Assembly: GCA_964019335.1 (NCBI GenBank)
Contig: OZ025704.1
Span: forward strand, 1-64,000
Source: Diplonema japonicum
Taxonomy: Eukaryota; Protista; Euglenozoa: Diplonemea
DNA: 64,000 nt
Direction: 5' to 3'
This document shows positions 1-53,324 of this stretch, piece after piece. Made by a program: the position numbers and the translations under genes. Positions within the stretch are counted from its first letter, which is position 1. The number at the start of each line of letters is the position of its first letter. The notes below the pieces were generated by a model. That model had not been told where the DNA came from and searched no databases. It was given only the letters and a program-made list of their open reading frames with translations.

Positions 1-483
1 TGCGGGTTTGCGGGTTTGCGGGTTTGCGGGTTTGCGGGTTTGCGGGTTTGCGGGTTTGCGGGTTTGCGGGTTTGCGGGTTTGCGGGTTTGCGGGTTTGCG
101 GGTTTGCGGGTTTGCGGGTTTGCGGGTTTGCGGGTTTGCGGGTTTGCGGGTTTGCGGGTTTGCGGTTTGCGGGTTTGCGGGTTTGCGGGTTTGCGGGTTT
201 GCGGGTTTGCGGGTTTGCGGGTTTGCGGGTTTGCGGGTTTGCGGGTTTGCGGGTTTGCGGGTTTGCGGGTTTGCGGGTTTGCGGGTTTGCGGGTTTGCGG
301 GTTTGCGGGTTTGCGGGTTTGCGGGTTTGCGGGTTTGCGGGTTTGCGGGTTTGCGGGTTTGCGGGTTTGCGGGTTTGCGGGTTTGCGGGTTTGCGGGTTT
401 GCGGGTTTGCGGGTTTGCGGGTTTGCGGGTTTGCGGGTTTGCGGGTTTGCGGGTTTGCGGGTTTGCGGGTTTGCGGGTTTGCG
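1..483. repeat. Telomere-like 8-bp tandem array (GGGTTTGC)n, ~60 units, running off the window start
   Basis: Near-perfect 8-mer array with one unit lacking a G at ~161-167. It ends at 483 (…TTTGCG|TGCCCC), where retroelement RLE-coding sequence begins. Confidence 0.97.
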
Positions 484-2445
484 TGCCCCGCAGTCTTCGC
501 CGCCTGGTTGACACAAGACTCGTTCCTCGGGTGCACGATGACCACGTCCATAGCCATTGGGCGGGAACCCCCCACCCCACCTGGGAAGAACACGTCCGCC
601 GGGCGCTGGGACGACCCCGGGATCAGCCCCGTCTTCTCCATCGTTGCACTCACCCCGGCCCACTGACAGTGTCTGTGGATGGTCTCCTTCACCGGTCGTG
701 CCTCGCAATCCTGGCGTTGCCGCATCCCTGGGCGTGGTCACCCCATACGTCCATCCCCTCAGTCTTGCACCTCGGGTCGTGGCAGCTCTCACCCTGCTTG
801 TAGACCGGAGCCCCCAACCACCACTTGATCAGAGCCCCAAACTCGTTGTCCGACAGCTGGTTGTAGAAGTCAGGCGTCGCCGTCAACCACGCCCCCGCAT
901 AGTGCATTGACTCCGACATCAACCTCGCTCTCGAGCATGCATCTGCTTTCGCCAAGAGGTCCTCCAGCGCCTTCTCATCAAGCACCCTAGAGAGCCACCT
1001 CTGGCTGCAGATGTGGGGGGCCTTGGCCACCATGTCGGGTGTAATCTGCATGCCGCCCTTCGTCCTGTTGAACCACTCGAGCCAGCTCCCCCATACACCC
1101 CCTTCCAGCCCATGTTCGTATTTGGGATCCAGCTCCTTGCACAGCTTCATCGTCGACGCCCTCGAAGCCATGTTGGCCGCGCGCAGGTGCTCCTGGCAGC
1201 TCCTCATCCCAAGCCCACCGACTTTTACGGACAGTTTCGCCTGCTGCCATTCTTTCGACCCGCTCTCGAACTGCATGCCGCACACCTTCGACATCGTCTT
1301 CCGCACCATCTCGTCGAACCTGTGCATGACCCCTCCCACATGCGAGTCTGGGACCACTCTCATGTAAAACACCAGTTTGCTGTATGAGCTGCAATACCGG
1401 AGAAGTGTGTACCCTGTCTGCCTCCCCACCTTGGTCAGCATGTCGAAGTTCTCTTCCAGCGCGTCCAAGCGTTTGTTCAGAAAGGCTTGCGTGTACTCCG
1501 GCGATCCTATCGGCGCCCCCAGGAGCATGAAGTTCCTCTCTTTGTGGAAATTCTCTTCTGTCAGGCCATCGAAGCCTGTGTCCTCCACTGTCTGGGGGAG
1601 GTCGCCACTAACCCATATGAGCTCGCACTTCTGGGGTTTCACTTTCAGCCCTATCATTCCGCTCAGCTCACACAAGATGTTGTACGCCTTTCTCACTTCA
1701 TCCACATTCCCCACAAGGACGCCATCGTCCAGGTAGAACTGGAGGATGTCCAGGTTGCAGTCTTCACTTATCTTGTTCACCAGGGGTTGGATGGCCAGAG
1801 AGAACAGCAGTGGTCCCATCGGGTCCCCCTGTTGCACCCCTTCCTGGGACTTAATCACCTTTCCGTTGTAGTATAAGGGCACCCTGTAGCACCAATCGGC
1901 CCACGCATACAGCCCCGACGCTTGCTCATAGGCCTGTGAGCACAGCTGTCTCCGACAAACACTGTTGAAGGCGTTGGCGTAGTCGATCTTGAGGATCACC
2001 TTGTTTTCCTGCTTGTTGCCCCGTTCCCTGTCCACATACTGCCTGATGGTGTGTATAGCCGCCTCCATTCCAGCAGGGACCGATACCCCCACCTGGCCGC
2101 CTTTCTTCAGGTACGAAGAGGCCACTTCCGGAGCGATCTTCTTCACAAGGGATTTCCCCACCAGCCGACGCAGCACATCCCCAACGGCTATGGGCCGCAC
2201 GTCCCTGTCGTTCTTCTTGAGGGCCACAAGGTTCGCCCCTGCCATCAGCGGAGCCACCTCCCTAGGGGCCGTGCCTCTAGCTAATGCGTTGACTGCCCTC
2301 GTCACCGACATCAAACAGCCTTGAGACTCAAAAGCTCCGTCCACCGCGTCCTTGATGTGCTGGGCTCTCAGACCAGTCGGTCCCGCAGCAGTCCCCCTCG
2401 GGAAGTCCCTGATTGCGTCCAGCACTTCTTCCGGCAAGACTTCTA

Positions 2446-2488
<43 letters not shown>

Positions 2489-5400
2489 GGGACTTGAGAA
2501 AATAAATAAATCTACCGCTTCCTTCGTCTTCGCCGGGTTGTCCCATTGGGGGTGTAGTGGCTCTGGATGTTTGCTCTGCAGCGCTCTCCAACAATCCTCA
2601 TTGTCTTCCGCCAGCCCCTGGGCTACAAGCGCCGCGTTTCCTGCCGAGAACCTCCCTTTGCTGCACAGTTCCGTGGCCCTGGCGACCTTAGAGACCTCGT
2701 CGTTCTTAGGTTCCCCCTTCTCACCTGATTCCAGCTTATTCCAGAGGGCCATGTAATTTCCCTTCTCCCACTCCTCCAATCTGGCCTGGACACTCAGCTC
2801 CGTCTCCTTGTCCCGCTTCTTCCCTCCCCTCTTCTTCCACAGGCAGGCTTTGGGGAGCATCGCCACCAGCAGCCAAGCCTCCTCTGTGTTGTCCTTCACC
2901 GCCCGGCCCAGAGTGTGCTTAAGGGTAAGCCCCCACAGTCTTTGAAGGCTCGTCGGGATCGACCCCATGGTCGTGACGTTCATGGCGGCTATGGCTTCCA
3001 GGCTGGGTAACTCGGTCCTCGTCGGGGCCGGCGGGGGGGTCGTGTATTCCCCTTCCCTTCGCACCGCCTTTTTGCACTCGTCGTGGCACCCCTGACCCTT
3101 CCACACACAGCCCCTGCACACCAGGCACCTCTCGAGGTCCAGTCTCCTCAGAACGCTCTCCGGGATCTCATCACTCTCCAGGTGCCCATCCAGGTGACAC
3201 TTCCATACCCTTGTCGAGTTGAACGGGGTCGTGCTTTTGCACTTCGACCTAGCGCAGTTCGCCACCGGACAGTACAGGAATTGCTGGTTCCTTGCCCCCA
3301 TCTGGTCCAACACCCCTGCCTTCCCGTATCCAGGGATCGCACGGTCTATTATGTCCCACTCCCCGATGTCCTCACCCGGGGCCTCGGAGGGTTGCTTACC
3401 TGCCTTTTGTAGAGCAACCGATTGGGACTCATCAAGGAGCATCATCATCGACTCCTCCTCTCCGACTGCATACTCGTAGTGGTTGCCGTTGTACGCCAGC
3501 ACCACCACCTTCTCGTGGTCGGAGTTGTACTCCCCTATCATCAGGACTGGGTTGTTCCCCCCAGCAACCACGAGTATCGTGCGGCCAAACGCTTGTGCTG
3601 CGGCTGCCAGGCACAAGTGGTCTCCCCACGTCGCCGCTGTGCCCATCCCTTCCAAGTACCGGTCCCAACCCCCGCTGCAAAACGGGGCATAGTGCTCCTC
3701 CCGGTGTTTCATCCATTCTACAACCTCGCTCCTGATGTGGGTGTGGTCCCCGTAGGCTTCCCCGAGCGAACCGGCCAGGGCGTGGAACATGCAGTTCCCG
3801 TCCTTCTCCGTCGATCTCCTCGTCAGCTTGAAGCTCTTCATGATCTCGTCCACTGACTTGCCGGCCCTGGGTTGTTTGTCGGGGTTCCACAGATTCCGCT
3901 GCCTGTGTAGTGCACAGTGCGTCTGGTTCGACGAGCACGCCGCAGCACACGTTCCACAGAGGTTCACCTTCATGTTCCTCGCCTGCTCTTGTTTCACAAA
4001 ATGATGGTGGACCGCATTGAGGTGTTTAACTAGACAGCTTGCCACACTGGTGCGGAAAGAGCAGCCTTCCATCCGGCATTGATGTTTGTCTGTTCCTTCT
4101 TTTTCCCCCTCCTTCTGCGCCTCCGTGTGCTCATCATCCAAATCCATGGGGGGAGGGTCACCACCTCCTTGCAACGCGTCCCCTGCCAGCGTCAAGTCCG
4201 CAAAGGGGTCCAGGTGTTCGGCCTGAAAGAGCTTATCCTCCGTCTCGGCTCGTTCCTTCGCCGCTTGCTTGGCGTCCTCCTTCTTTTTTCTGCGTATTGA
4301 GCTTCTAGGCGGGCCCAAGTACACCGGCAGGTAGTGACCTCTCGATCCGCGTCTTGTCTTCCTCAGCTTTACCGGTCCGAATCTCTGGGTCGGGTCAGCA
4401 CCAGCTTTCCCCACCATCACTTCCGACATGGCCCAGAGCGACATCAGCCCCCCTATCCAAACTGAAGTGCTTCCCACCAGAGTGCCCCCTACTGCTAGCC
4501 AAGCGAGCTCCCCGGCGGACCATTCATCCCCTCGGGGCCCCACCTGTACCCTTGACCTGCGGGTGGTCCTCCTGTCGCTCCCCGGCCTCTTCCACAACAC
4601 TGCCGCATGCAGGAAGGAGGGGGCCATCCCGATGCCCGCCCCCAGCACCTGCCTCACCCCTGGGATCAGCAAGAGGGAGACCAGGGCGACCCAGGCCCAC
4701 GCCCCCAGGTGCTCCCATCTCACCCCTTCCTTGCTGTGTCCCGTCCGTCTGCGGTGCCTCCTTGTGCCGGTTGCAGCCCCAGGTGCCGGGATTCTGGGTG
4801 CCAGGGGTTGGGCTCCAGGCGTTCCCACCTCGGTCCGCTTCAGCCCCATTGCAGGGTCATCTGGCTTCTGTTTCAGGGCGGCCTCGTGTTCCTCTCTGCG
4901 GGCCCTCCTCCTCCCCTCTTTCCTCGCACGACGGTGCCTTTTCTTCTCCTGTCTGGCAGCCTCCCTCGCCCCCTCCCTCGCCTTGGTCCTCTTCTCCCGA
5001 CGCCTCTGAAGGGCCGTTTCGCTCCTGTGCCTCCTCCTGTTCTTCTTCCGCTTGGGCGCTGGCTTAGGTTCCCTGCCACCCATGGCAATCCAGGGGGCTC
5101 TTTTCTGTCTTCTCACAAGGGTGTGCAGTGGTGCTCTCACGTCGCTCGCAGCCTCCGCCCCAACCACACCTTGGCGGGCGGTGGGGGTGGGTGCTGGGTC
5201 CCCCTGGTTGTTTGAAAAGAAAAAAGGTTCCTCCTTGTTTGTTTTTTTTTTTTTCTTTCCCTTCCACCCTCAAAAAAAGCCCCCGGCCCTTGGGGACCAG
5301 GGTGTACACCTCCGTAGAGGGTCCAGAAAAAATGGGGGGCAGAGAGGGAGGGGCACTACCTTCTCTCGGGTGTGCTGTCTCTCCCTCTGCCTTTTTTTCC

Positions 5401-6769
5401 TCCGAAGAGGGTCTGTTTTTCACCTCCGTGGAGGGTCCCTCTGGAGAGGGCTCTATAAAAGAAAAAGGGGGGGACGAATGGGGGGGAGGAACACTACCCT
5501 CTCTCGGGAGTGCCACCTCTTCCCCTCTCTCTCTGTTTTCCTCCGAAGAGGGTCTGTTTTTTACCTCCGTGGAGGGTTCCTCTGGAGAGGGCTCTAAAAA
5601 TGAAAAAGGGGGGGACAAATGGGGGGGAGGAGCACCACCCTCTCTCGGGAGTGCCACCTCTTCCCCTTTCTCTCTATTTTCCTCCGAAGAGGGTCTGTTT
5701 TCCTCCGAAGAGGGTTCTAAAAAAAAAAAGGGGGCGGGTGGGGCACTATCCTCTCTTGGGAGTGCCACCCCCCCTTGCCCACAAAAAAGGGGATCTAAAA
5801 AGGGGGGTTCGTCTGTTAACCCAGGGGATGGGTCTTCCTGGGGTGTGCGGGTGAGCTTGGGGCCTACCGCACGCAGGGTGATCGACACCCTGACACCAGT
5901 GGACATCCCGGACGGGATGTGGTGCGTCCACTGGTGTCTCGCTTCACCTTCCAACAATGCCCATGAGAAGGGGGGCACCAGGTATTTCGCCACCCTGTCC
6001 CCCCTCCTCATGACCATTGTGGTCTCGGCTCCGTACGAGAGGACTAGGACAATCGGTCCCAGCCTCGCGTCGTCCTTGTGGGCGGCAATCCCACAACCAG
6101 ACTTGTACTTGTTGACAAGTACCTGGTTGGGGACCACCTCGAGCCCTGCGGCGGCGGCCACCTCCCTCACCCACCCCTCCGCCCCCCCTGGGATCCCCGT
6201 GGTGGGGCGCACCTTGGCGTTCGTCCCCTCCCACCGGTACCCGTATTGGAGGGTCTCCCTCCCTGAGTTCCCAGACAGGGCCTCCCACTTTCCTGAAAGC
6301 AGGGCTTTCGGGAAGGCAGGGGCCGGGCCCGTCCTCAACCCGGGAGGGTGTTCACCATACACCAGTACCCACCCCTTTTTTTCTCCCTCTTTTCCTCCCT
6401 CTTCAACAATAGCAGGGTCGGCTGCAGGGGTCGTGGTCGCGGCGGTCGTGGCTGCGGCAGGGGCGGCTGCGGCGGTCTCAGTTGCGGCGATCAGGGCGGC
6501 AGGGTCGGCTGCGGCGTTCAGGGCGGCTGGGGCGGCCGTGGCTGTAGCAGCGGCGGTCAAAACCGCGGTCTCTGCTAGTGATTTTTTTATTTTATTATTT
6601 TTTTTTTCTAAAGGGGGGTGGGGGGATCTAGGGGGTGGGGATTCATACTGCCCAACCAGATTGCCTGGTTGGGTGGGTCTCGGCGCCGTGTGCTGCGGGC
6701 TGCGGGCTTGCTCCTGCGGGCTGCGGCTGCGGCTCGGTCACCTCCTCCTGCGAGTCGTCTTGGATCCAT
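484..6769 (-). CDS. Retroelement polyprotein (~2000 aa after splicing): AlkB, repeats, basic/hydrophobic, C2H2, OTU, C2H2, RT, CCHC, RLE. This copy has a frameshift at ~692 and is truncated at 484.
   Basis: Exons 6769-6649, 6574-5310, 5233-2516 and 2446-~692 join in frame (checked by hand), linking track ORFs 5064..6560, 2480..5167 and 689..2437. AlkB: NQVLVNKY…IAAHKD…WTHHI…RVSITLR. OTU: DGNCMFHALA…WG…NHYE. Confidence 0.8.
2447..2515 (-). other. Intron 3 of the retroelement (69 nt, phase 0, contains in-frame TAA and an A34 tract)
   Basis: GAA GCG|GTAGATTT…(A)34G|GTA GAA GTC TTG. Removal gives KTKEA-VEVLPEEVLDAIRDFPRGTAAGP, the expected lead-in to the RT domain. Confidence 0.85.
5234..5309 (-). 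other. Probable intron 2 of the retroelement (76 nt, phase 0); alternatively a 1-nt indel in the A13 run
   Basis: ACG GAG|GTGTAC…(A)13CAAACAAG|GAG GAA CCT joins the AlkB ORF to the OTU ORF in frame. The acceptor is host-like; the donor is non-consensus. Confidence 0.5.
5300..5775 (-). repeat. About four diverged 110-141-bp coding tandem repeats (…VALPREG…PP…F.EPS…STEVKNRPSSEE…) inside the retroelement ORF
   Basis: A CAC(T/C)A(C/T)C anchor recurs at 5354, 5492, 5633 and 5744, together with CCTCCGAAGAGGGT blocks. The frame stays open throughout. Confidence 0.85.
6575..6648 (-). other. Spliceosomal intron 1 of the retroelement (74 nt, phase 1)
   Basis: GGC A|GTATGAAT…AAAAAAATCACTAG|CA GAG. Host-consensus GTATG donor and A-rich acceptor. 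Removal fuses MDPRR…AIWLG to ETAVLTAAA in frame; unspliced, the frame hits a stop. Confidence 0.82.
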
Positions 6770-6817
6770 TTTTTTTTTTTTTTTTGTTTTATAGTGTGTG
6801 TTGGGGGGGAGGGGATC

Positions 6818-6855
6818 CAATAAAGTACAGAAACTGTAGCTTTAGAATCGTTGGT
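6818..6855 (-). other. Integrated spliced-leader (mini-exon) sequence, 38 nt, at the 5' end of the retroelement
   Basis: The minus strand reads ACCAACGATTCTAAAGCTACAGTTTCTGTACTTTATTG. The 3' part CAGTTTCTGTACTTTATTG is the conserved kinetoplastid/diplonemid SL end, and the 5' part resembles the Diplonema SL (from memory). It is followed by GATCCCC (element 5' UTR), not by a GT SL intron. Confidence 0.93.
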
Positions 6856-8830
6856 GAGTGCATCAAGGATTTCCAAGCTGTTCATCTCAATGGGGTTTGT
6901 GAAATCTCTTTGCACCGTTTGCAAGTACCACAACCCTGACTTTGACTTCACTGTGGACGATATCTATCAGTTTCTGGCCTTGTGGGTGCTCATGGACATC
7001 ATCTGCAAGGCTGGCATAAAAGATTACTGGCCGACCATTTGTGCCCTCGCCACACCTTTTTTTGGCAAGTGTAATGAAACGTTACTGCTTTTTGCGCTTA
7101 CAGCGGTCGTTGCATTTTGGAGGGGTGAAGAGACAGACAGGTTGCAAAAAATAAGATTCTTGCTCCCCTACCTGTCTGCAACACTATTCCCCTGGAGAAT
7201 CGATCATTGATGAGAGTATGATCAAGTCACACGGTAGGCATCGCTTCAGAGTATTCCAGCCTGCAAAGAGGACAGGTGAGGCTGTGCACTGGACAGGATC
7301 TGACACAGGGTCGTGTTCAACTTGTCGATCTACTGTCCGCAGTGCTAATACCATTGTAAAAGCGTGAAAAAGCAATCAAACACAGCACTGTGGACCCCGA
7401 TGTGAGGTATCTCAGCACTTGGCATATTACCTTCCCATTTGGTGAAGGATCGAGGTCATTGTAGGGGGGTGCTGGTGTTTGGGAGCCCTGACTTGTGTAC
7501 AGGATTGGTGTACCACGTGATCACTGCAGAAGCACCAATGCTTATGATGCCAAAAAAGGACAACATGGCGACCAGAATGTCTCGGCGGCGGAGCTCTGCT
7601 TCGAGCTTCTTGTCCTGCAGCTCGAGCGCGACAATGAAAGCTCTTACAACGTTCTCCCATATCTCCTGTGGTGCCTTCAATGGCGTCTTGCTTGACATGA
7701 AGTGAACGTCGTGCTCAGTCTGAAAGCGCACCCCACGTGACTTGTCGATGCCACTATTCGTGTCCACCTGGTGGATGGCTTGGCATCGGTAGCGTTCCCC
7801 TTGTACCCCGGCATCGATAACTTCTACTGGTGTTACCCTTGTACAACAGATGTGGGAATCGGGTTTGTGGTGGAAACAATCTGAGGAAAGTCCAGTCAAT
7901 GGTAACAATCCGAAGAAAACCACCAGAATGTACCTAATCTTGCCCCAGTGAAGAAGCAAGTAGGCCCAGGCAGGCCCAAAAACGGGTTCGCGATGAGCGA
8001 CAACAGCTTTTCGACTGTTATGCACCAGTCTGGAAACAACCGCCCAGCAAGCACCCGTTCTGAAATGGGGACCGAGGGGCCCAGGGAAGATGCCAGGCGC
8101 GACTTCACCAAAGGCCACTGGTCCAAAAAACTGGATGCAGCAAGACAATGCACACACCACATGCGTGTTTTGGGGGTCCGGGTGCAAACTATCTTCATCT
8201 GCAAGGCTTGTAACGTGCATCTGTGCCCAGCTTGCTTTGCGGACTATCACGAACCAGTGGTTTACCCACCCCAATCTACCCCCTCTGGAGGCCCGGCCAC
8301 ACCGAAGAAACGCCTAAGGTACGTCTCCAAACACATACCCTTCTCCCCAGGTCGTCATCTGAGCCAAGTCCCAAAAGCAAAACCCCCCCTAGCACTCCGA
8401 GGCCCAAGTGAAAAAAGTAAGGAAGTGTCTAACCTATGGTGGGTTTTTACAATAAATTTCACTTCAATTCCTTTTTCTATTCACTTCCCAGGGCCTTTGA
8501 GGGGTGTCTGGGGGTGTTTTTTGTCCCTCCTGGGTGATGTATTTTCTTTTACACAAGCGTCGTTCTATGGTTGCATGCTCAAGGATGTTTTAATTTTAGA
8601 AAATAAAAAAGTCGATGGTGACCTTTTTTTTGCCCAAAAACCCCCATCCTTTAATAGTTAATAACTAGTTAAATTGGCAAGCAGCATGACAGGGATTGAC
8701 TTCTTTTAAGGGTGATTTTACCCCCCCTTCTTTTTCTAGGTTTTAGGTTCTATGTCAATTTCACCCATAGAATGTTGCAAAAAAAATCTTCTGGATTTTT
8801 TACACTGCAGAATTGGGTTAAAAAGGTTAA
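6856..8830 (+). mobile_element. Decayed piggyBac-like DNA transposon (5' part displaced by the retroelement insertion)
   Basis: Frame-broken transposase motifs: FTVDDIYQFLAL…KDYW, DRLQKIR, IDESMI (~7206), IDNFY (~7812) and C-terminal Cys-rich RQC…C..C.VHLCPACFADYH (~8143-8250). Candidate right ends GGG-TTAA (8815-8821) or AGG-TTAA (8824-8830) are uncertain. Confidence 0.8.
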
Positions 8831-9460: not shown

Positions 9461-10435
9461 CAGGTGGTGGGGATAACATGAAAACATAAGAAAAACATCA
9501 GATGTGTTGTTTGCTGTTGACCTCCTCATTGGTCATCACTGAGCAAACCACACGAGTGCAGAATCTTGGTTACCCAGGGCACCCCGGCTAGGGTTGAGCT
9601 GAACCCCACACACATTAAGGACACAGAGTACAGAAGAAGCTACAACTCGGCCACAGTGATTAAGGACACGATGCAGAATGCAGAAGAAGCTACAACCTGG
9701 CTGTGGTGCACCCCCTGTAATCAAGTAGACAGTTCTTGTGCAGGGTGCCACCAACACCGGCTTCTTTTAACTCATATATATATCGTTCAGGTGGTGGGGA
9801 TAACATGGAAATATAAGAAGTACATCTCATCAGAGTGTGTTGTTTGCTGTTGACCTCCATGTCAGTCATTACCAGTAGTGCCCAAGTGGGAGAACATAAT
9901 GCAGATGCTCAGGGTGATGAACTGGCAGGTTGCCCTGGGTTGTGTTGCTCTGGCTGGGGTTAAGCTGCACACTGCACACATTAAGGACACAATGCAGAAC
10001 ACAGAAGAAGCTACAGTGCCCCCCTGAAGTTAACAGTTCTTGTGCAGGCACCACCAACATGATGAACAGGCATTTTCCTCCATCCACTTGGCCAGTCATC
10101 ACCTGTAGCACCCTGAGTGGAAGAACAAATTGCAGATGCTCAGGGTGAGTAAACTACTTAGGGCACCAGCTAAAGTTGAGCTGCACACCACATGCATTAA
10201 GGACATGACACAGAATGCAGAAGCGGCTGAGGTGCACCCCCTGTCACTGGTCTCCTTTACCTCTTTCATGTTATTTGGTGGTGGGGATTACAGAAATATG
10301 GAAATATAAGAAGTACATCAGATGTGTTGTTTGCTGTTGACCTCCATGTTGGTCATCACTGGTAGCACCCAAGTGGAGGAACGTATTGCAGATGCTCTGG
10401 TGTTGAGCTGCACTGCACACATTAAGGACACAACA
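9461..10435 (+). repeat. Three diverged tandem copies of a ~150-450-bp unit, also present at ~17636-17965
   Basis: The unit start GGTGGTGGGGATAACATG…GTTGTTTGCTGTTGACCTCC recurs at ~9463, ~9790 and ~10277, followed by GCAGATGCTC… and CACACATTAAGGACAC blocks. Confidence 0.8.
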
Positions 10436-11859: not shown

Positions 11860-14800
11860 CAGGGTTGGTCAGACCAGACCAGTCTGGTAAAACCGAAAAT
11901 ACAGGTCTGAGGGGTCTACTGACCAGTCTGGCCCCAACTTTTTTTTTCCTTTGTCAGGTGTCTTGCCACACACCACAGGTACCCTTAAATGTCTTTCTTT
12001 TTTTTCTTTCTTCTTCTTCATACCACAGACATGCACAGCTCCATCAAGCCATTTGACACATTTGCACCTATCTACTCTGGTTCACTGCAGCTGCAGGTAT
12101 GTACATATGTCCTGAAATGTTGAATTTGGATGTAATAGAAAAGGGTGGAAATGATAAATAATATGTACAAGAGGAGGGTGTGTGTGTTTACACAACCTGT
12201 GTAAACAGATCGGTTCCTTAATCATATTTAAAAAAAGAAGGGGGGGAAGCAATATATTTTTACAGGTGGGTAATGGGTGAGTGTGTTTATGTTTTGAACA
12301 ACTGTGTAAAACAGTGCTCAGATATCGACCTGTGTAAACAGATCAGTTCCTTCCTTTCCAAGGTGCTCAGCTCTTTTCAAGCGGCTTGCCTTTTCTTTCT
12401 TCTCACTCACAAAAAAATTAGGTTGAACCAACTTGTAGTTGATAGCAACGCGGATTGATGCATTTAGAACATCCGATGACATTCTGCATCTGGCTTTTGA
12501 CAAAGTCTTTGAAATCACTTTAAAGTGATGCTCCATTGGTGCCTCAGAGGTTAAACTGCACCCAAGCGTCAGTGCAAAGACAGCTAGCGTGTGAAGCATG
12601 CCAAGCTTCGAGTTCCAAAAAGCAAAAAAGTTTAATGTTGGGCTGCAACCTATTGCTAGGTACTCGTCAATCTGCATCCCCAGCTGCTGCCGATCTGCCA
12701 TCATTTTTCGCAATTCAGCGAACGGGACGAGGTGATCCAGCAGTGTGTTTCACAGTGTGACCAAGTCTGAAAGTTCTCCAGTTGATACTTTGGGATTCAG
12801 AAAAGTATACAACCTGATACCAAGAAACGACATGTTTCGTTCGGCCCTTGCTTTGTAAACCTTGATGACTTCAGAGACTGTGGTAGCATTGAGTGACCCC
12901 TCCACCTGGGATTCAAGGAATTTCTTCAAGCTCTTTCCAACAACGAAAATTTCATATGCCACCATAGCCATGCCAGATGTGTCCCCTTGCACACGATCTG
13001 TTGCAACTGTGAAGGGTGTGGAAATCTGTATCGTGAATTCCAGCTCTGCCCCAAACCCTGCCTCTATGCCTGGAAAGAATTCTAGGAGATCAAGGATGGA
13101 CTTCATCGTTTCGAAAAACGAATTCCATCTGGTCTTCGTGTACCTCTTGATCTGTCTCATCTTTTCACGGCATACTCCATGTGAGACCTGTACAGTGTGG
13201 AGTGCCAACTGCCCAGCTTTCGAGGTCCATCTCTTGATCAGCGTTTTCACTTTGGCTCTAATGTTAGCCAGTCGCTCAATCTTGAAGATGTCACCAAGGG
13301 CAAGTTGCATGGAATGTGCAACACAACGATATGCTAGGACACCTTCGCAACTCAGCATTGTAGTTGTATCGTTCAAAAGCTGGTCCATTCCGGCAGAGAG
13401 CTCAGTGTTGTCGGAGTTGGTGTCGGTTTCAGAGTTGGAGTCAAGGTCAGTGACACCTGAAGCATCACTACTGCTAATGTTGCTGCTAACATCCTCAGTG
13501 TCGTCGAGTGAGAGGTCGAGTTCCACTTCGAAGTCTTGATGTATCTTCGCAAGCACTGCTTGCATCGCACTAGCATTATCAGCACATACTGAAAATACAT
13601 GTACAACATGGCTCCAAAGTTCCAGTATCATTTCACGGATGTGGGACGAAATGACAGCAGCAGTGGCACTCACTTTTGTAAGGTCTATCATCTTGCAAAA
13701 GTAGCTGTTCTTCCCATCTGACATACTAATGCCAAGGATGCTTCGACGGTTTATTGTGGCCCTATCAACAAGGAGGTACACATTCTGCCCTTGGAGCCTG
13801 TTTAGGACAGCAGCGTATGTCTCCTGTCCAAGTTCAACAACACGGCTTTGCACGTGTTTCCTGTTGATTCCTTTCAATTTGCCTGCATCGAAAAAGCTGT
13901 GAAAGAACTTTCGATCACACAAAACGAACGGCAGGCAATACAGGCAAAGGAAAATGGACACACGATCCACCATACTCAGGGCAACACATCTCTTTGCTGC
14001 GAGATTTGAGCCTTGAGAATGAGGCGAACCCTGTGACAGCGACAACCCTGGCATTGGCTCAGAGATCGGACTGCACTTTTCTTTCACTGGACTGCACTTT
14101 TCTTTCGCCGGCTTGGGGATCTTTGCAGCTGTCTTCTTCTTCAGCTTTTCTGCCAATTTCGCTTTCGCACCAGGGCTGTGTCTGCACTCCCAGTGCTCCT
14201 TCAGCTTCCCCGATCTTGACCGGATGGTCACCGCACGTTCAACACACTCAGGGGCAAGACACGGCCGCTTCTCCATGACCGTGCCATCCTTTTCCTTTGT
14301 CACTATCTTGCCAAAGTAGTACTCCTTAGAAGGGTCGATACCTGTGCATCACCAACAGACCATGTCTTGTTGTCCCAGATGGATGTCTTGGGTGTTGTAG
14401 AACATTCCTTGGCAGGTGCTTCCAACATGACTAGTGCGTTTCCGGACGAGGTGTGTGTTGCCTTAGGTTGTAAGGCTTCAGCCTTCAGAACTTTGATGGT
14501 GTCTTGTAGCTCTGTGATTCGTGCTTTTGCAAGACCAAGTTTTGCCATGGTATCACGAAGCTGGTATGGGTTGTGGTTTATCGTCTTTATGGCCTCAAGA
14601 CGATAAACCCGTTCATCTTCCACATTCGGGGGGAAGTGGTGCAGGTACCCAGGATCCTGTGCATACTCACACGAAACAGCAACACCTGGCAAGATGCCAA
14701 CAATCTTCCCATCCCAGACAGAAACCATGTCGTCCTGTGTTGGTTTCTTGTGTCGCTCCCCTCCAGTGCCCCAGAAGTGGGCTCTGAAGGTTGTGCCTTC

Positions 14801-51719: not shown

Positions 51720-51792
51720 GCCCCGTTGGCGCAATGGATAGCGCGTTGGACTTCGAATCCAAAGGTTGCGGGTTCAAGTCCCGCACGGGGTT
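51720..51792 (+). tRNA. tRNA-Arg(TCG)
   Basis: Cloverleaf: GCCCCGT/ACGGGGT acceptor stem, GCGC D stem, TTGGA-CTTCGAA-TCCAA anticodon arm and GCGGG-TTCAAGT-CCCGC T arm. A T-run follows. Confidence 0.95.
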
Positions 51793-51829
51793 GTTTTCTT
51801 TCCGGATTTCCTCAAATAACATCCCTAGC

Positions 51830-52295
51830 CCACAACTATGCGGTGGCGACCGAGCTTCGGTCCGCGCACTTCCCCCTTGGCTTCCCCAGACAAGCTGAAA
51901 CGGTCATCTCGCGGCTGCGGATTGGTCACTCGGCTCTCTTCTTCGGCTTCCTGCAGACTGCTGGCCCGAACAGGAAGCACAAGGGTGTGCTCCGGTGCCC
52001 AGCCTGCCACGCAGCGCCGATGTCCAGGGAGCATGTTGTCGGTGGGTGCCCTGTGATCGGGAGGGGGGCGATCGACACTCCTGCTGGTACTCCCTCCCTA
52101 GCGTTCTCCCTGTCGAGACGCGTGACCCAGATCTACGACCTCGTTGTTGAGTCTGGCCTGCTCGCCTGGTCACGCTCCGGACTGTTCACCTCGCCATCAT
52201 CCCTGGCGTCTACGGACGTCACTGCACCTTCAAACGTGCCGCCCCCTCCTCCGGTCTCTCTTGACGCCGGTCCCGTGGCCCCCGTGCTGCGCTAA
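51830..52295 (+). mobile_element. 5'-truncated fragment of an Ingi/I-group non-LTR retrotransposon (C-terminal CCHC region)
   Basis: RQAETVISRLRIGHS…CPAC…EHVVGGCP, typical of the I/Ingi ORF C-terminus. Stop at 52293-52295. Confidence 0.7.
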
Positions 52296-52704
52296 GGGAT
52301 CGCCCCGCGTGTGTGTGTAAAATGGAATGTTGTGTTTCCCACTTTCCTTTCCCTTCCTTCCCCTTCCTCTCACTGTTTCCCATTTCCCCTTTTTTTTCAC
52401 ACTCACCAATGATTCGCTCAATAGGAGCAATACCTCCCTGGGGGCCAAAGAAGGACATCCAGCTGGAAGGTAGGCCCCCGTTTTTCTCTCACTTGACTGA
52501 GGGAATAATGTAATTCAGCCCTCTTCGGCTGTCCCAAAGCAGAGCACGGGTTGGTGGGGGACCAGGGCTCCTCCTGCTTGCAGAAGCCTGGTCCTTTGCC
52601 CTCCCTATTTCCCCATGGTTTCCCTTCACCTTTTTTTCCCTTTTCTCAGGTGTTGCTCTCCATGGCGGCCCTGCATTGGTATTTTGAAAAAAAAAAATTG
52701 TGCA

Positions 52705-52776
52705 GGGTACGTAGCTCAGTGGTAGAGCGTTCGGCTGCAGTCCGATTGGTCCCTGGTTCGAACCCGGGCGTGCCCT
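52705..52776 (+). tRNA. tRNA-Cys(GCA), copy 1
   Basis: GGGTACG/CGTGCCC acceptor stem, anticodon loop CTGCAGT, T arm GGTTCGAAC. Oligo-T follows. Confidence 0.95.
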
Positions 52777-53252
52777 ATTTTTTTTTAACCCACGTCAACA
52801 GTCCCATAATCTGGAAGAAGAGCAGGGAATGTGGCAAAGATAAAGATTATGGCTACTCAAGCTTCAAAGAAGAACTTGTTAGCAAGCTTCTCAACCATGC
52901 CCCAAAAACCGATTGCACCGTCACCGACCCCCACCGCGCAAACACGCGGACTAGCAGTGAGGATTCCCACCCAGAAATACGCAACACAGCTTTCCAGGAC
53001 CCAATGAAAAACGGCCATGGTCCACTTCCGGGCATTCATATGCCGAACTCAGGTCCCTGGAGGGTGTCCCCGGCCACGTCCGTCAAGAAGAAACGGACAT
53101 GATCCCCAGGGACATGGGCTGCAAAGTGGTCGGCAGGAGGTTTGCCAAGGTCGACGGCAGGAAGGTCATGTTCTTGCAGGTGGTCGCCTCACAGCCCTCG
53201 ATCTTCCAGTACGGCGACAGGCTCCTGAAGTGCCACGCGAAGGGCAAAATGT

Positions 53253-53324
53253 GGGTACGTAGCTCAGTGGTAGAGCGTTCGGCTGCAGTCCGATTGGTCC
53301 CTGGTTCGAACCCGGGCGTGCCCT
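53253..53324 (+). tRNA. tRNA-Cys(GCA), copy 2 (identical to copy 1)
   Basis: 72/72 identical to 52705-52776, followed by ATTTTTT. Confidence 0.95.

Follow-up and report, generated by a model that had tools for sequence, protein, structure and literature searches.

What kind of RNA is copied when a retrotransposon carries both a spliced leader (SL) and introns in its genomic DNA? The question is raised by an element on the minus strand at positions 484-6855 of the window, the first 64 kb (64,000 nucleotides) of contig C57 (OZ025704.1) of the diplonemid Diplonema japonicum. The initial annotation had described it as a retrotransposon copied from trans-spliced RNA, with three GT-AG introns (6648-6575, 2515-2447 and probably 5309-5234) that were either retained in the template or gained after insertion. 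The D. japonicum YPF1604 genome spans 62.30 Mb in 118 chromosomes (PMC13598402), and the assembly used here holds 62.5 Mb in 132 contigs. We found that the element is a dead, 3'-truncated copy of a multi-copy, chromosome-end-associated non-long-terminal-repeat retrotransposon family. A copy search of the assembly returned at least 40-77 near-identical members, mutually 99-100% identical and nearly all located within about 15 kb of contig ends. The family is probably a telomere-targeting long interspersed nuclear element (LINE) with a restriction-like endonuclease (RLE) that copies an SL-capped, mostly intron-retaining RNA, the window containing a dead and repeat-capped member.

Bases 6855-6818 (minus strand) read ACCAACGATTCTAAAGCTACAGTTTCTGTACTTTATTG and pass directly into the 5' untranslated region (UTR; GATCCCC...), with the ATG at 6769; the 48-nt leader behind the SL begins GATCCCCTCC. 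The same 38 nt form the exon of the species' true SL RNA genes, where they are followed by GTACCCAATC or GTACCCAATCTGATCC... and a conserved block, GTTTGGAGAAAGAGGTCCGGGAGGTTA, lies upstream. These genes are arranged in tandem units of ~352 bp beside a 5S rRNA gene (L028/L029, C15:777580-780223; L011 on C4; L004 on C2), and both flanks of the SL RNA gene were also seen as loose ends of run contigs aligned to the window. An Rfam scan of the SL RNA gene loci gave no match to an SL RNA model and returned only the adjacent 5S rRNA gene (102.6 bits). Genome-wide, the 25-nt core of the SL occurs 223 times, versus 0 for the reversed control. SL RNA genes make up a few of these sites; at the others the SL heads retro-copies. 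The fusion of a 38-nt SL to the element's 5' UTR was therefore read correctly at the outset: the 38-mer is identical to the SL RNA gene exon. No SL intron stands behind it either, in the window or in any of 17 family copies among the fetched loci, and in these 17 copies 17 unrelated sequences abut the first nucleotide of the SL.

The SL is joined to one and the same family 5' UTR at three positions, giving leaders of 121, ~27 and 0 nt. The commonest head reads SL|GTCGTTCG...(121 nt)...GAAAG|GATCCCC, so that copies such as L012, L024 and L005 have 121 extra nucleotides before GATCCCC; a second form, SL|GCCCGG...(27 nt)...AAAG|GATCCCC, occurs in some copies; and the third, SL|GATCCCC, is found in the window, at the opposite end of C57 and on C31. 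In the window, the junction lies immediately behind the AG that precedes GATCCCC in the long form (...GAAAG|GATCCCC). Two copies, L017 and L025, consist of SL + TTTCTGTACTTTATTG + leader, which reads as a new SL spliced onto an AG inside an older, DNA-encoded SL. Differing flanks, the missing SL intron, several SL positions and SL relics together require repeated transcription, splicing and reverse transcription. The copied template was thus a processed, SL-bearing RNA, and the claim that a genomic SL-UTR fusion marks reverse transcription gains support from the varied flanks, SL positions and relics. Because the SL|GATCCCC head needs splicing of a long-UTR copy's RNA at an internal AG, the window copy would be at least second-generation. 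Its head could have been made by trans-splicing at this AG or by cis-splicing from a DNA-encoded SL|GT donor, with the same product.

Several further observations concern the SL. At least five other unrelated sequence families open with a complete SL (L001; L002/L006/L020; L003; L007; L015/L016/L023/L026), making SL-headed retro-copies a genome-wide phenomenon. Many SL-headed retro-copies read SL|GT..., more often than chance suggests. In the long leader, GUCGUU behind the SL can pair with SL nucleotides 4-9 and thereby cover the SL|GU junction (L012:385-552, minus strand); the fold of this leader as a whole was no more stable than its shuffles (z -0.04). SL fragments of 6-35 nt, stuttered, lie between a unit end or poly(A) and telomere repeats in L024 (at the C11 end), at C40:384-445 and at C99:1223-1283. 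Their appearance suggests that copying was aborted, and templates were switched, at the capped 5' ends of RNAs.

Of the three introns proposed, the first (6648-6575) is real and family-wide. With it left in, the frame from the ATG stops after 53 codons; with it removed, ATG 6769 joins the frame of the AlkB-like oxygenase. The unspliced donor junction AATCTGGTTGGGCA|GTATGAATCCCC was found in 68 copies genome-wide and the exact exon 1-exon 2 junction AATCTGGTTGGGCA|CAGAGACCGCGG in 6 copies on six contigs, with no occurrence of either reversed control. These counts bear out a host-style intron that is carried through copying. The intron 1 region was present in every scored copy (84-100% identity), and different 5' flanks were seen in at least six of the copies that retain the intron. 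One contig of run X3 extends 4 nt past the intron 1 acceptor into the intron; the sole ground for regarding X3 as RNA is the depth of its SL bin, ~1000x that of the rest, and no run is on record as RNA. All evidence from runs consists of assembled contigs, with the low-complexity stretches 2438-2496 and 6579-6625 left out of the alignment.

The same sequence has another reading in a sister subfamily. In subfamily B (L010, L017), translation continues in frame through the 71 nt that correspond to intron 1 and splicing is not needed, so this 71-74-nt sequence is an intron in subfamily A and coding in subfamily B, by intronisation or exonisation. The two meet in L018 (C9, SL at 9914-9938, minus strand), which is chimeric. 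A B-type SL, leader and exon 1 reach to the middle of the homologous region; from there the copy continues as spliced A-type body, with exon 2 directly behind the final 20 nt of A-type exon 1. The switch point has 2 nt of microhomology and the L018 open reading frame (ORF) does not depend on splicing. Such a product is expected if the reverse transcriptase (RT) jumped from a spliced A RNA onto a B RNA.

The other two proposed introns fared differently. At 2515-2447, all 29 fetched copies, together with about 39 listed copies, read the empty site GAAGCGGTAGAAGTC, while the window reads GGTAGA + TTTATTTATTTTCTCAAGTCCCCCTTTTT + A34 + GGTAGA. The 29 nt of TTTATTTATTTTCTCAAGTCCCCCTTTTT are the 3' terminus of the family 3' UTR, as seen in L064 and L005. 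This stretch therefore reads as a severely 5'-truncated, poly(A)-tailed retro-insertion of the family's own 3' end at a non-telomeric site, flanked by a 6-bp target-site duplication (TSD). The 63-nt insertion plus one TSD copy makes up the 69-nt 'intron 2', the TSD supplying both its GT and its AG, and we withdraw it as an intron. At 5309-5234, the AlkB frame stays open as far as 5066 and the OTU-RT frame is open from 5269, offset by one base. Contigs of three other runs (X3, X6 and X12) carry one A fewer at 5242, in the A13 run, and with A12 in place of A13 the two frames fall into one giant ORF. The spliced junction proposed here occurs in no genomic copy in a genome-wide search, and the RNA-like X3 contig spans the region unspliced. 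'Intron 3' is thus a frameshift artefact of a private extra A.

Taking out all three stretches does yield a single open frame of 1953 codons, as had been reported; two of the removals merely undo private damage. Scored copy by copy, 6648-6575 holds family-wide, 2515-2447 is private and 5309-5234 is unneeded. Of the two options first posed, an intron-retaining template and later gain, intron 1 fits the former; the sequence at 2515-2447 was indeed gained later, but carries no evidence of splicing.

Position 484, which had been taken for the element's end, is a truncation inside the RLE. The element sequence ends ...GGGGCACGCA and is capped by a 483-bp array of (CCCGCAAA)n that runs up to contig position 1; in about 30 other copies the element goes on past this point for over 1.5 kb. 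In most copies more than 500 further codons of the ORF follow the RLE, comprising an acidic low-complexity stretch and, behind it, a region without Pfam match (L066, C97:367796-371311), so full-length units must be much longer than the window's 6.4 kb. The RLE frame of the window copy is also broken by a 1-nt deletion near 691-694. Together with the extra A in A13 and the 63-nt insertion, this makes three private lesions. The flank breakpoint lies exactly at 6855/6856, and other contigs continue differently left of 6856. The features of the copy and its surroundings are collected in Table 1.

Table 1. Positions in the window of the retrotransposon copy, its parts and its flanks.
Feature	Position	Strand	Basis
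Retrotransposon copy (AlkB-OTU-RT-RLE)	484-6855	-	Pfam domains; genome copies
38-nt SL, DNA-encoded, exact 5' end	6818-6855	-	matches exon of tandem SL RNA genes
Short 'c'-form 5' UTR, 48 nt	6770-6817	-	comparison with longer family 5' UTRs
Exon 1, from ATG 6769	6649-6769	-	translation reaches an in-intron stop unless the intron is removed
GT-AG intron 1, 74 nt, retained	6575-6648	-	genome-wide junction counts
AlkB-like 2OG-Fe(II) oxygenase domain	5871-6272	-	PF13532, E 5.5e-14; HKD...H...RVSITLR read in translation
141-nt tandem repeat, 2.5 units, within the ORF	5346-5701	-	TRF
A13 homopolymer with private +1 base	5242-5254	-	one base fewer in contigs of X3, X6, X12
OTU cysteine protease domain (DGNCMFH ... 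NGNHYEY)	3485-3802	-	PF02338, E 2.7e-12
Private 63-nt insertion (family 3'-terminal 29 nt + A34)	2448-2510	-	empty site in 29/29 fetched copies
TSD GGTAGA	2511-2516; second copy 2442-2447	-	sequence reading
RT domain	1589-2218	-	PF00078, E 3e-17
CCHC knuckle + RLE, frameshifted, cut at 484	484-800	-	frames; intact L066
Terminal 8-mer array (CCCGCAAA)n, putative telomere	1-483	-	TRF period 8, 60.5 copies, 99% matches
Upstream flank, degenerate repeat, possibly piggyBac-like remnant	6856-8660	+	zf-Tnp_2 E 0.004, below cut-off

The upstream flank had been described as piggyBac DNA rather than an SL promoter. The second half of that statement stands; a transposase was not confirmed, as Pfam gave on this flank only zf-Tnp_2, below threshold, and no match to DDE_Tnp_1_7. 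Elsewhere in the window we noted a weak DUF659 match (possibly hAT-like) in a 517-codon ORF at 12753-14303 (minus strand) and a cluster of three tRNA genes at 51720-53324 (plus strand).

The element is an RLE-bearing LINE of the R2/CRE group. By sequence, the sole solved relatives of its RT are R2 proteins (E 8e-8). Homologues of the RT (n=513) are 30-39% identical; the best 120 are unnamed proteins, and the closest come from metagenomes, sponges and dinoflagellates. Behind the RT, the intact copy L066 carries C..C..H..C, RHD, E, RPADV and DVVI..K motifs, and the C/H positions of this knuckle-RLE region are invariant in 26 homologues. An AlphaFold (AF2) model of the 240-residue region had a pLDDT of 89. 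In a Foldseek search its top five matches in the PDB were R2 proteins (E 1e-5 to 5e-4, TM 0.50-0.55), with further PD-(D/E)xK nucleases ranking after them; the predicted fold thus supports the assignment of an RLE. Element domains were searched ORF by ORF, the joined-exon model being translated for frame tests only. Within the element ORFs Pfam found no apurinic-like endonuclease (APE), the matches being 2OG-FeII_Oxy_2, OTU and RVT_1. The private insertion displays the hallmarks of target-primed reverse transcription (TPRT): a 29-nt 3' end with A34 (63 nt in all), a 6-bp TSD, 5' truncation and 29 empty sites. The trait of the CRE clade, insertion inside the SL RNA gene exon, is absent, as the flanks are not SL-gene DNA; so are the Penelope-like RT and the GIY-YIG or missing nuclease of Penelope/Athena elements, in place of which stand an RVT_1/R2 RT and an R2-like RLE.

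Intact members encode, as the contigs of three other runs indicate, one giant polyprotein comprising an AlkB-like oxygenase, zinc fingers, an OTU protease, the RT, a CCHC knuckle and the RLE. The catalytic motifs of the oxygenase (HKD, H, RVSITLR) and of the OTU domain (DGNC...H) are kept within this LINE polyprotein. To our knowledge, a LINE that includes an AlkB domain has not been published.

The company that the copies keep is that of chromosome ends. Arrays of (CCCGCAAA)n, with variant units CCCCGCAAA and CCCGCAAAA, stand at the listed contig ends (C1, C3, C4, C5 and others), always 5' to 3' toward the end. The C-rich strand thus apparently runs to the terminus, the reverse of canonical telomere polarity, and (TTAGGG)4 has zero occurrences genome-wide. 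A literature search for the terminal 8-mer gave chance matches only. A candidate telomerase reverse transcriptase gene was noted at G000:C41:533974-534300 (plus strand), in an open frame of 1086 codons whose Telomerase_RBD match, at 28.4 bits, exceeds the cut-off.

At most chromosome ends, members of the family follow one another head to tail in chains. The minus strand holds all 18 SL heads that lie no more than 11 kb from a contig start, with the 3' ends facing the terminus. Complete 3' ends are joined through a poly(A) of A6-A14 to CCCGCAAA at 8 loci. Truncated units also carry telomere repeats, attached at many different positions within the element with microhomology of 2-5 nt. On the other side of the unit, (CCCGCAAA)k|SL junctions were found at 7 loci, mostly in one register, AAA^CCC, and other SL heads abut short poly(A), a truncated unit or pieces of SL. 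At C99:344384-358678 (L039-L041, L063-L065) at least three units follow one another with an exact period of 6021 bp; compared with most copies, these units lack an internal part of the C-terminal extension. Copies beside repeats, head-to-tail arrangement, short repeat tracts and a shared AAA^CCC register are what a telomere-targeted LINE would leave.

These findings suggest the following cycle. The element would be transcribed by Pol II and given an SL like host mRNAs, and intron 1 would be spliced from just part of its RNA. In subfamily A only the spliced RNA would link the ATG to the polyprotein, while the RNA that is reverse-transcribed would be mostly SL-bearing and intron-retaining. Integration would be target-primed on a duplex of telomeric repeats, (TTTGCGGG)n: the RLE may nick the G-rich strand at the AAA^CCC boundary, where a T-run would be able to pair with the poly(A). 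R2-like end-to-end template jumps could then produce poly(A)|SL junctions, SL stutters and chimeric copies. Copies that are 3'-truncated and repeat-capped, including that of the window, would result from internal priming or from erosion of the terminus and subsequent de novo addition of repeats.

A number of observations weigh against this account. Splicing of intron 1 is shown solely by the six processed genomic copies. All six share one internal length, ~142 nt shorter over the 5346-5701 tandem repeat, and may consequently stem from a single event. Given 99-100% identity and a subtelomeric location, many of the 68 copies with the intron could be products of break-induced replication or gene conversion. 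Unspliced A-type RNA yields a 53-codon frame from the ATG, leaving unexplained how RT is supplied to the template RNA. At the chromosome ends, most SL heads meet non-telomeric DNA directly (k = 0), which insertion into arrays does not predict; the 3' end points toward the terminus, opposite to the MoTeR elements of Magnaporthe oryzae and to HeT-A of Drosophila; and the outward orientation, combined with the apparently reversed repeat polarity, is unexplained. Finally, the window-private lesions in A13 and at the 69-nt insert are known from the assembled contig, and A13 could be a homopolymer assembly error.

Another view is that, after one or a few captures of the SL, the family was amplified chiefly as DNA, through break-induced replication or gene conversion, in which case retention of the intron says little about the template. 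The identity of the copies and their location almost entirely within ~15 kb of contig ends are in its favour, as are the rare SL|GATCCCC form at both ends of C57, the exact period on C99 and the one length common to the six intron-less copies; MoTeR arrays are known to grow by D-loop or break-induced replication (PMC7367193). It does not account for 17 different sequences abutting the SL. SL relics behind an internal AG, stutters, poly(A)|SL junctions and the spliced/unspliced chimera need RNA copying, as does the TSD-flanked poly(A) insertion at a non-telomeric site. We therefore consider this view possible though unlikely, and DNA-level spread is likely to be an additional amplifier of the family, not the sole one.

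The abutment of SL heads on non-telomeric DNA could also reflect the way in which units join the chromosome. It is conceivable, but on balance doubtful, that the reversed-polarity ends, with CCCGCAAA on the 3'-terminal strand, were built from chains of LINEs attached SL-first and copied from trans-spliced, intron-retaining mRNA. If true, this would amount to a retrovirus-like split between spliced mRNA for protein and unspliced RNA for copying, and SL-first attachment would differ from the target priming of HeT-A and MoTeR. For the attachment itself, the chromosome 3' end would prime second-strand synthesis on a full-length cDNA. Such a step agrees with most SL heads abutting eroded non-telomeric ends or 1-4 repeat units, with units that always point outward and with chains in which a complete SL comes after every 3'-truncated unit. 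It has no known precedent, and RT template jumps with 5'-junction deletions account for the same junctions; the 6-20-nt SL fragments between poly(A) and repeats in L024 are explained more simply by jumps than by cycles of addition and erosion. We judge SL-first addition to be quite improbable. A HeT-A-like terminal TPRT was rejected on the opposite orientation of the units.

That the ORF holds three host-type introns, its protein being made from fully spliced RNA, is very improbable: the single 1953-codon frame and the GT-AG ends of all three would fit, but one 'intron' is a TSD-flanked retro-insertion in no other copy and another is accounted for by one extra A, the RNA-like contig spanning the latter unspliced and every processed copy keeping it, so that we rejected this reading and treat the two as private damage. 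Least probable of all, to the point that we ruled it out, is that the SL is target DNA from an insertion into an SL RNA gene, as made by RLE-bearing trypanosomatid elements such as CRE1/2, SLACS and CZAR (PMC4640811) and conceivable given SLACS-like RTs in the D. papillatum annotation (PMC10161547), since the whole 38-nt exon is present, the promoter block of the true genes is missing upstream, all upstream flanks differ, the 3' side is telomere repeats or poly(A) with neither SL intron nor gene remainder, and the SL is joined at three UTR positions.

For the SL-capped, telomere-targeting LINE that we favour, the nearest known systems are MoTeR1/MoTeR2 of Magnaporthe oryzae and the FoTeRs of Fusarium, which are telomere-targeted, RLE-bearing, CRE/SLACS-like LINEs (PMC7367193, PMC12857005). 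The diplonemid family shares with MoTeR an RLE-type RT at chromosome ends, head-to-tail arrays, interstitial repeat tracts from half a unit upward, truncated copies that are telomere-capped and a sense strand co-linear with the C-rich strand. The orientation differs, in that the MoTeR 5' end faces the terminus (PMC7367193), whereas in the diplonemid units the 3' end does. MoTeRs start with variant telomere repeats, not with an SL, are without intron, AlkB or OTU, have no described poly(A) and reside in a fungal host with canonical TTAGGG polarity. Other telomere-specialised LINEs with strict orientation, TRAS1/SART1 of Bombyx and HeT-A/TART of Drosophila, lack both SL and intron and have either no nuclease or one of APE type, and HeT-A attaches by its poly(A) with the 3' end toward the centromere, opposite to the diplonemid units.

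With respect to the SL, the closest parallel is provided by the SL-relic retrogenes of dinoflagellates, in which a DNA-encoded 5' SL likewise marks reverse transcription (PMC5585692, PMC6050394, PMC12014239) and, after repeated cycles, truncated relic SLs left by re-splicing to an AG of the old SL stand behind a new SL (PMC6050394), as in L017 and L025. The diplonemid family displays the traits of such retrocopies, namely a complete SL without SL intron at many unrelated sites, and relic SLs. The dinoflagellate cases are retrocopies of host genes and usually intron-less, whereas here an autonomous euglenozoan retrotransposon has kept its intron. CRE1/CRE2, SLACS and CZAR of trypanosomatids are, like the present family, euglenozoan RLE LINEs associated with SL sequence; they sit at a fixed position in the SL RNA gene exon, while here the SL is the copied 5' end of an RNA and the target is a chromosome end. 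In the literature we found no description of SL-headed retrotransposons, of this terminal 8-mer or of such arrays for diplonemids, and the D. japonicum genome paper is silent on telomeres and transposons (PMC13598402).

As regards the intron, the unspliced copies recall two groups of elements. Unspliced and spliced retro-copies coexist in human L1, where spliced integrated copies (SpIREs) are found and the unspliced RNA is the usual template, and Penelope and Ogre elements are intron-bearing. Splicing of L1 is harmful and incidental, and Penelope differs in its RT and in having a GIY-YIG nuclease. Unlike in L1, the ATG of subfamily A depends on splicing for its link to the polyprotein, and the sister subfamily reads the homologous 71 nt in frame.

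The family offers genomic proof that an autonomous retrotransposon was copied from an ordinary SL-capped mRNA in a trans-splicing eukaryote. Its SL serves as a built-in tag of full-length retrotransposition, and shortened UTRs and relic SLs allow generations to be counted. With two of three 'introns' recognised as ordinary private damage, an over-reading of the locus is corrected, and the 68 intron-bearing versus 6 processed copies constitute a natural system for the choice that a LINE makes between spliced and unspliced RNA. One and the same stretch of 71-74 nt illustrates intronisation or exonisation between two subfamilies. Present at almost every chromosome end of a diplonemid with an undescribed terminal repeat and polarity, the family also has a bearing on the maintenance of these ends.

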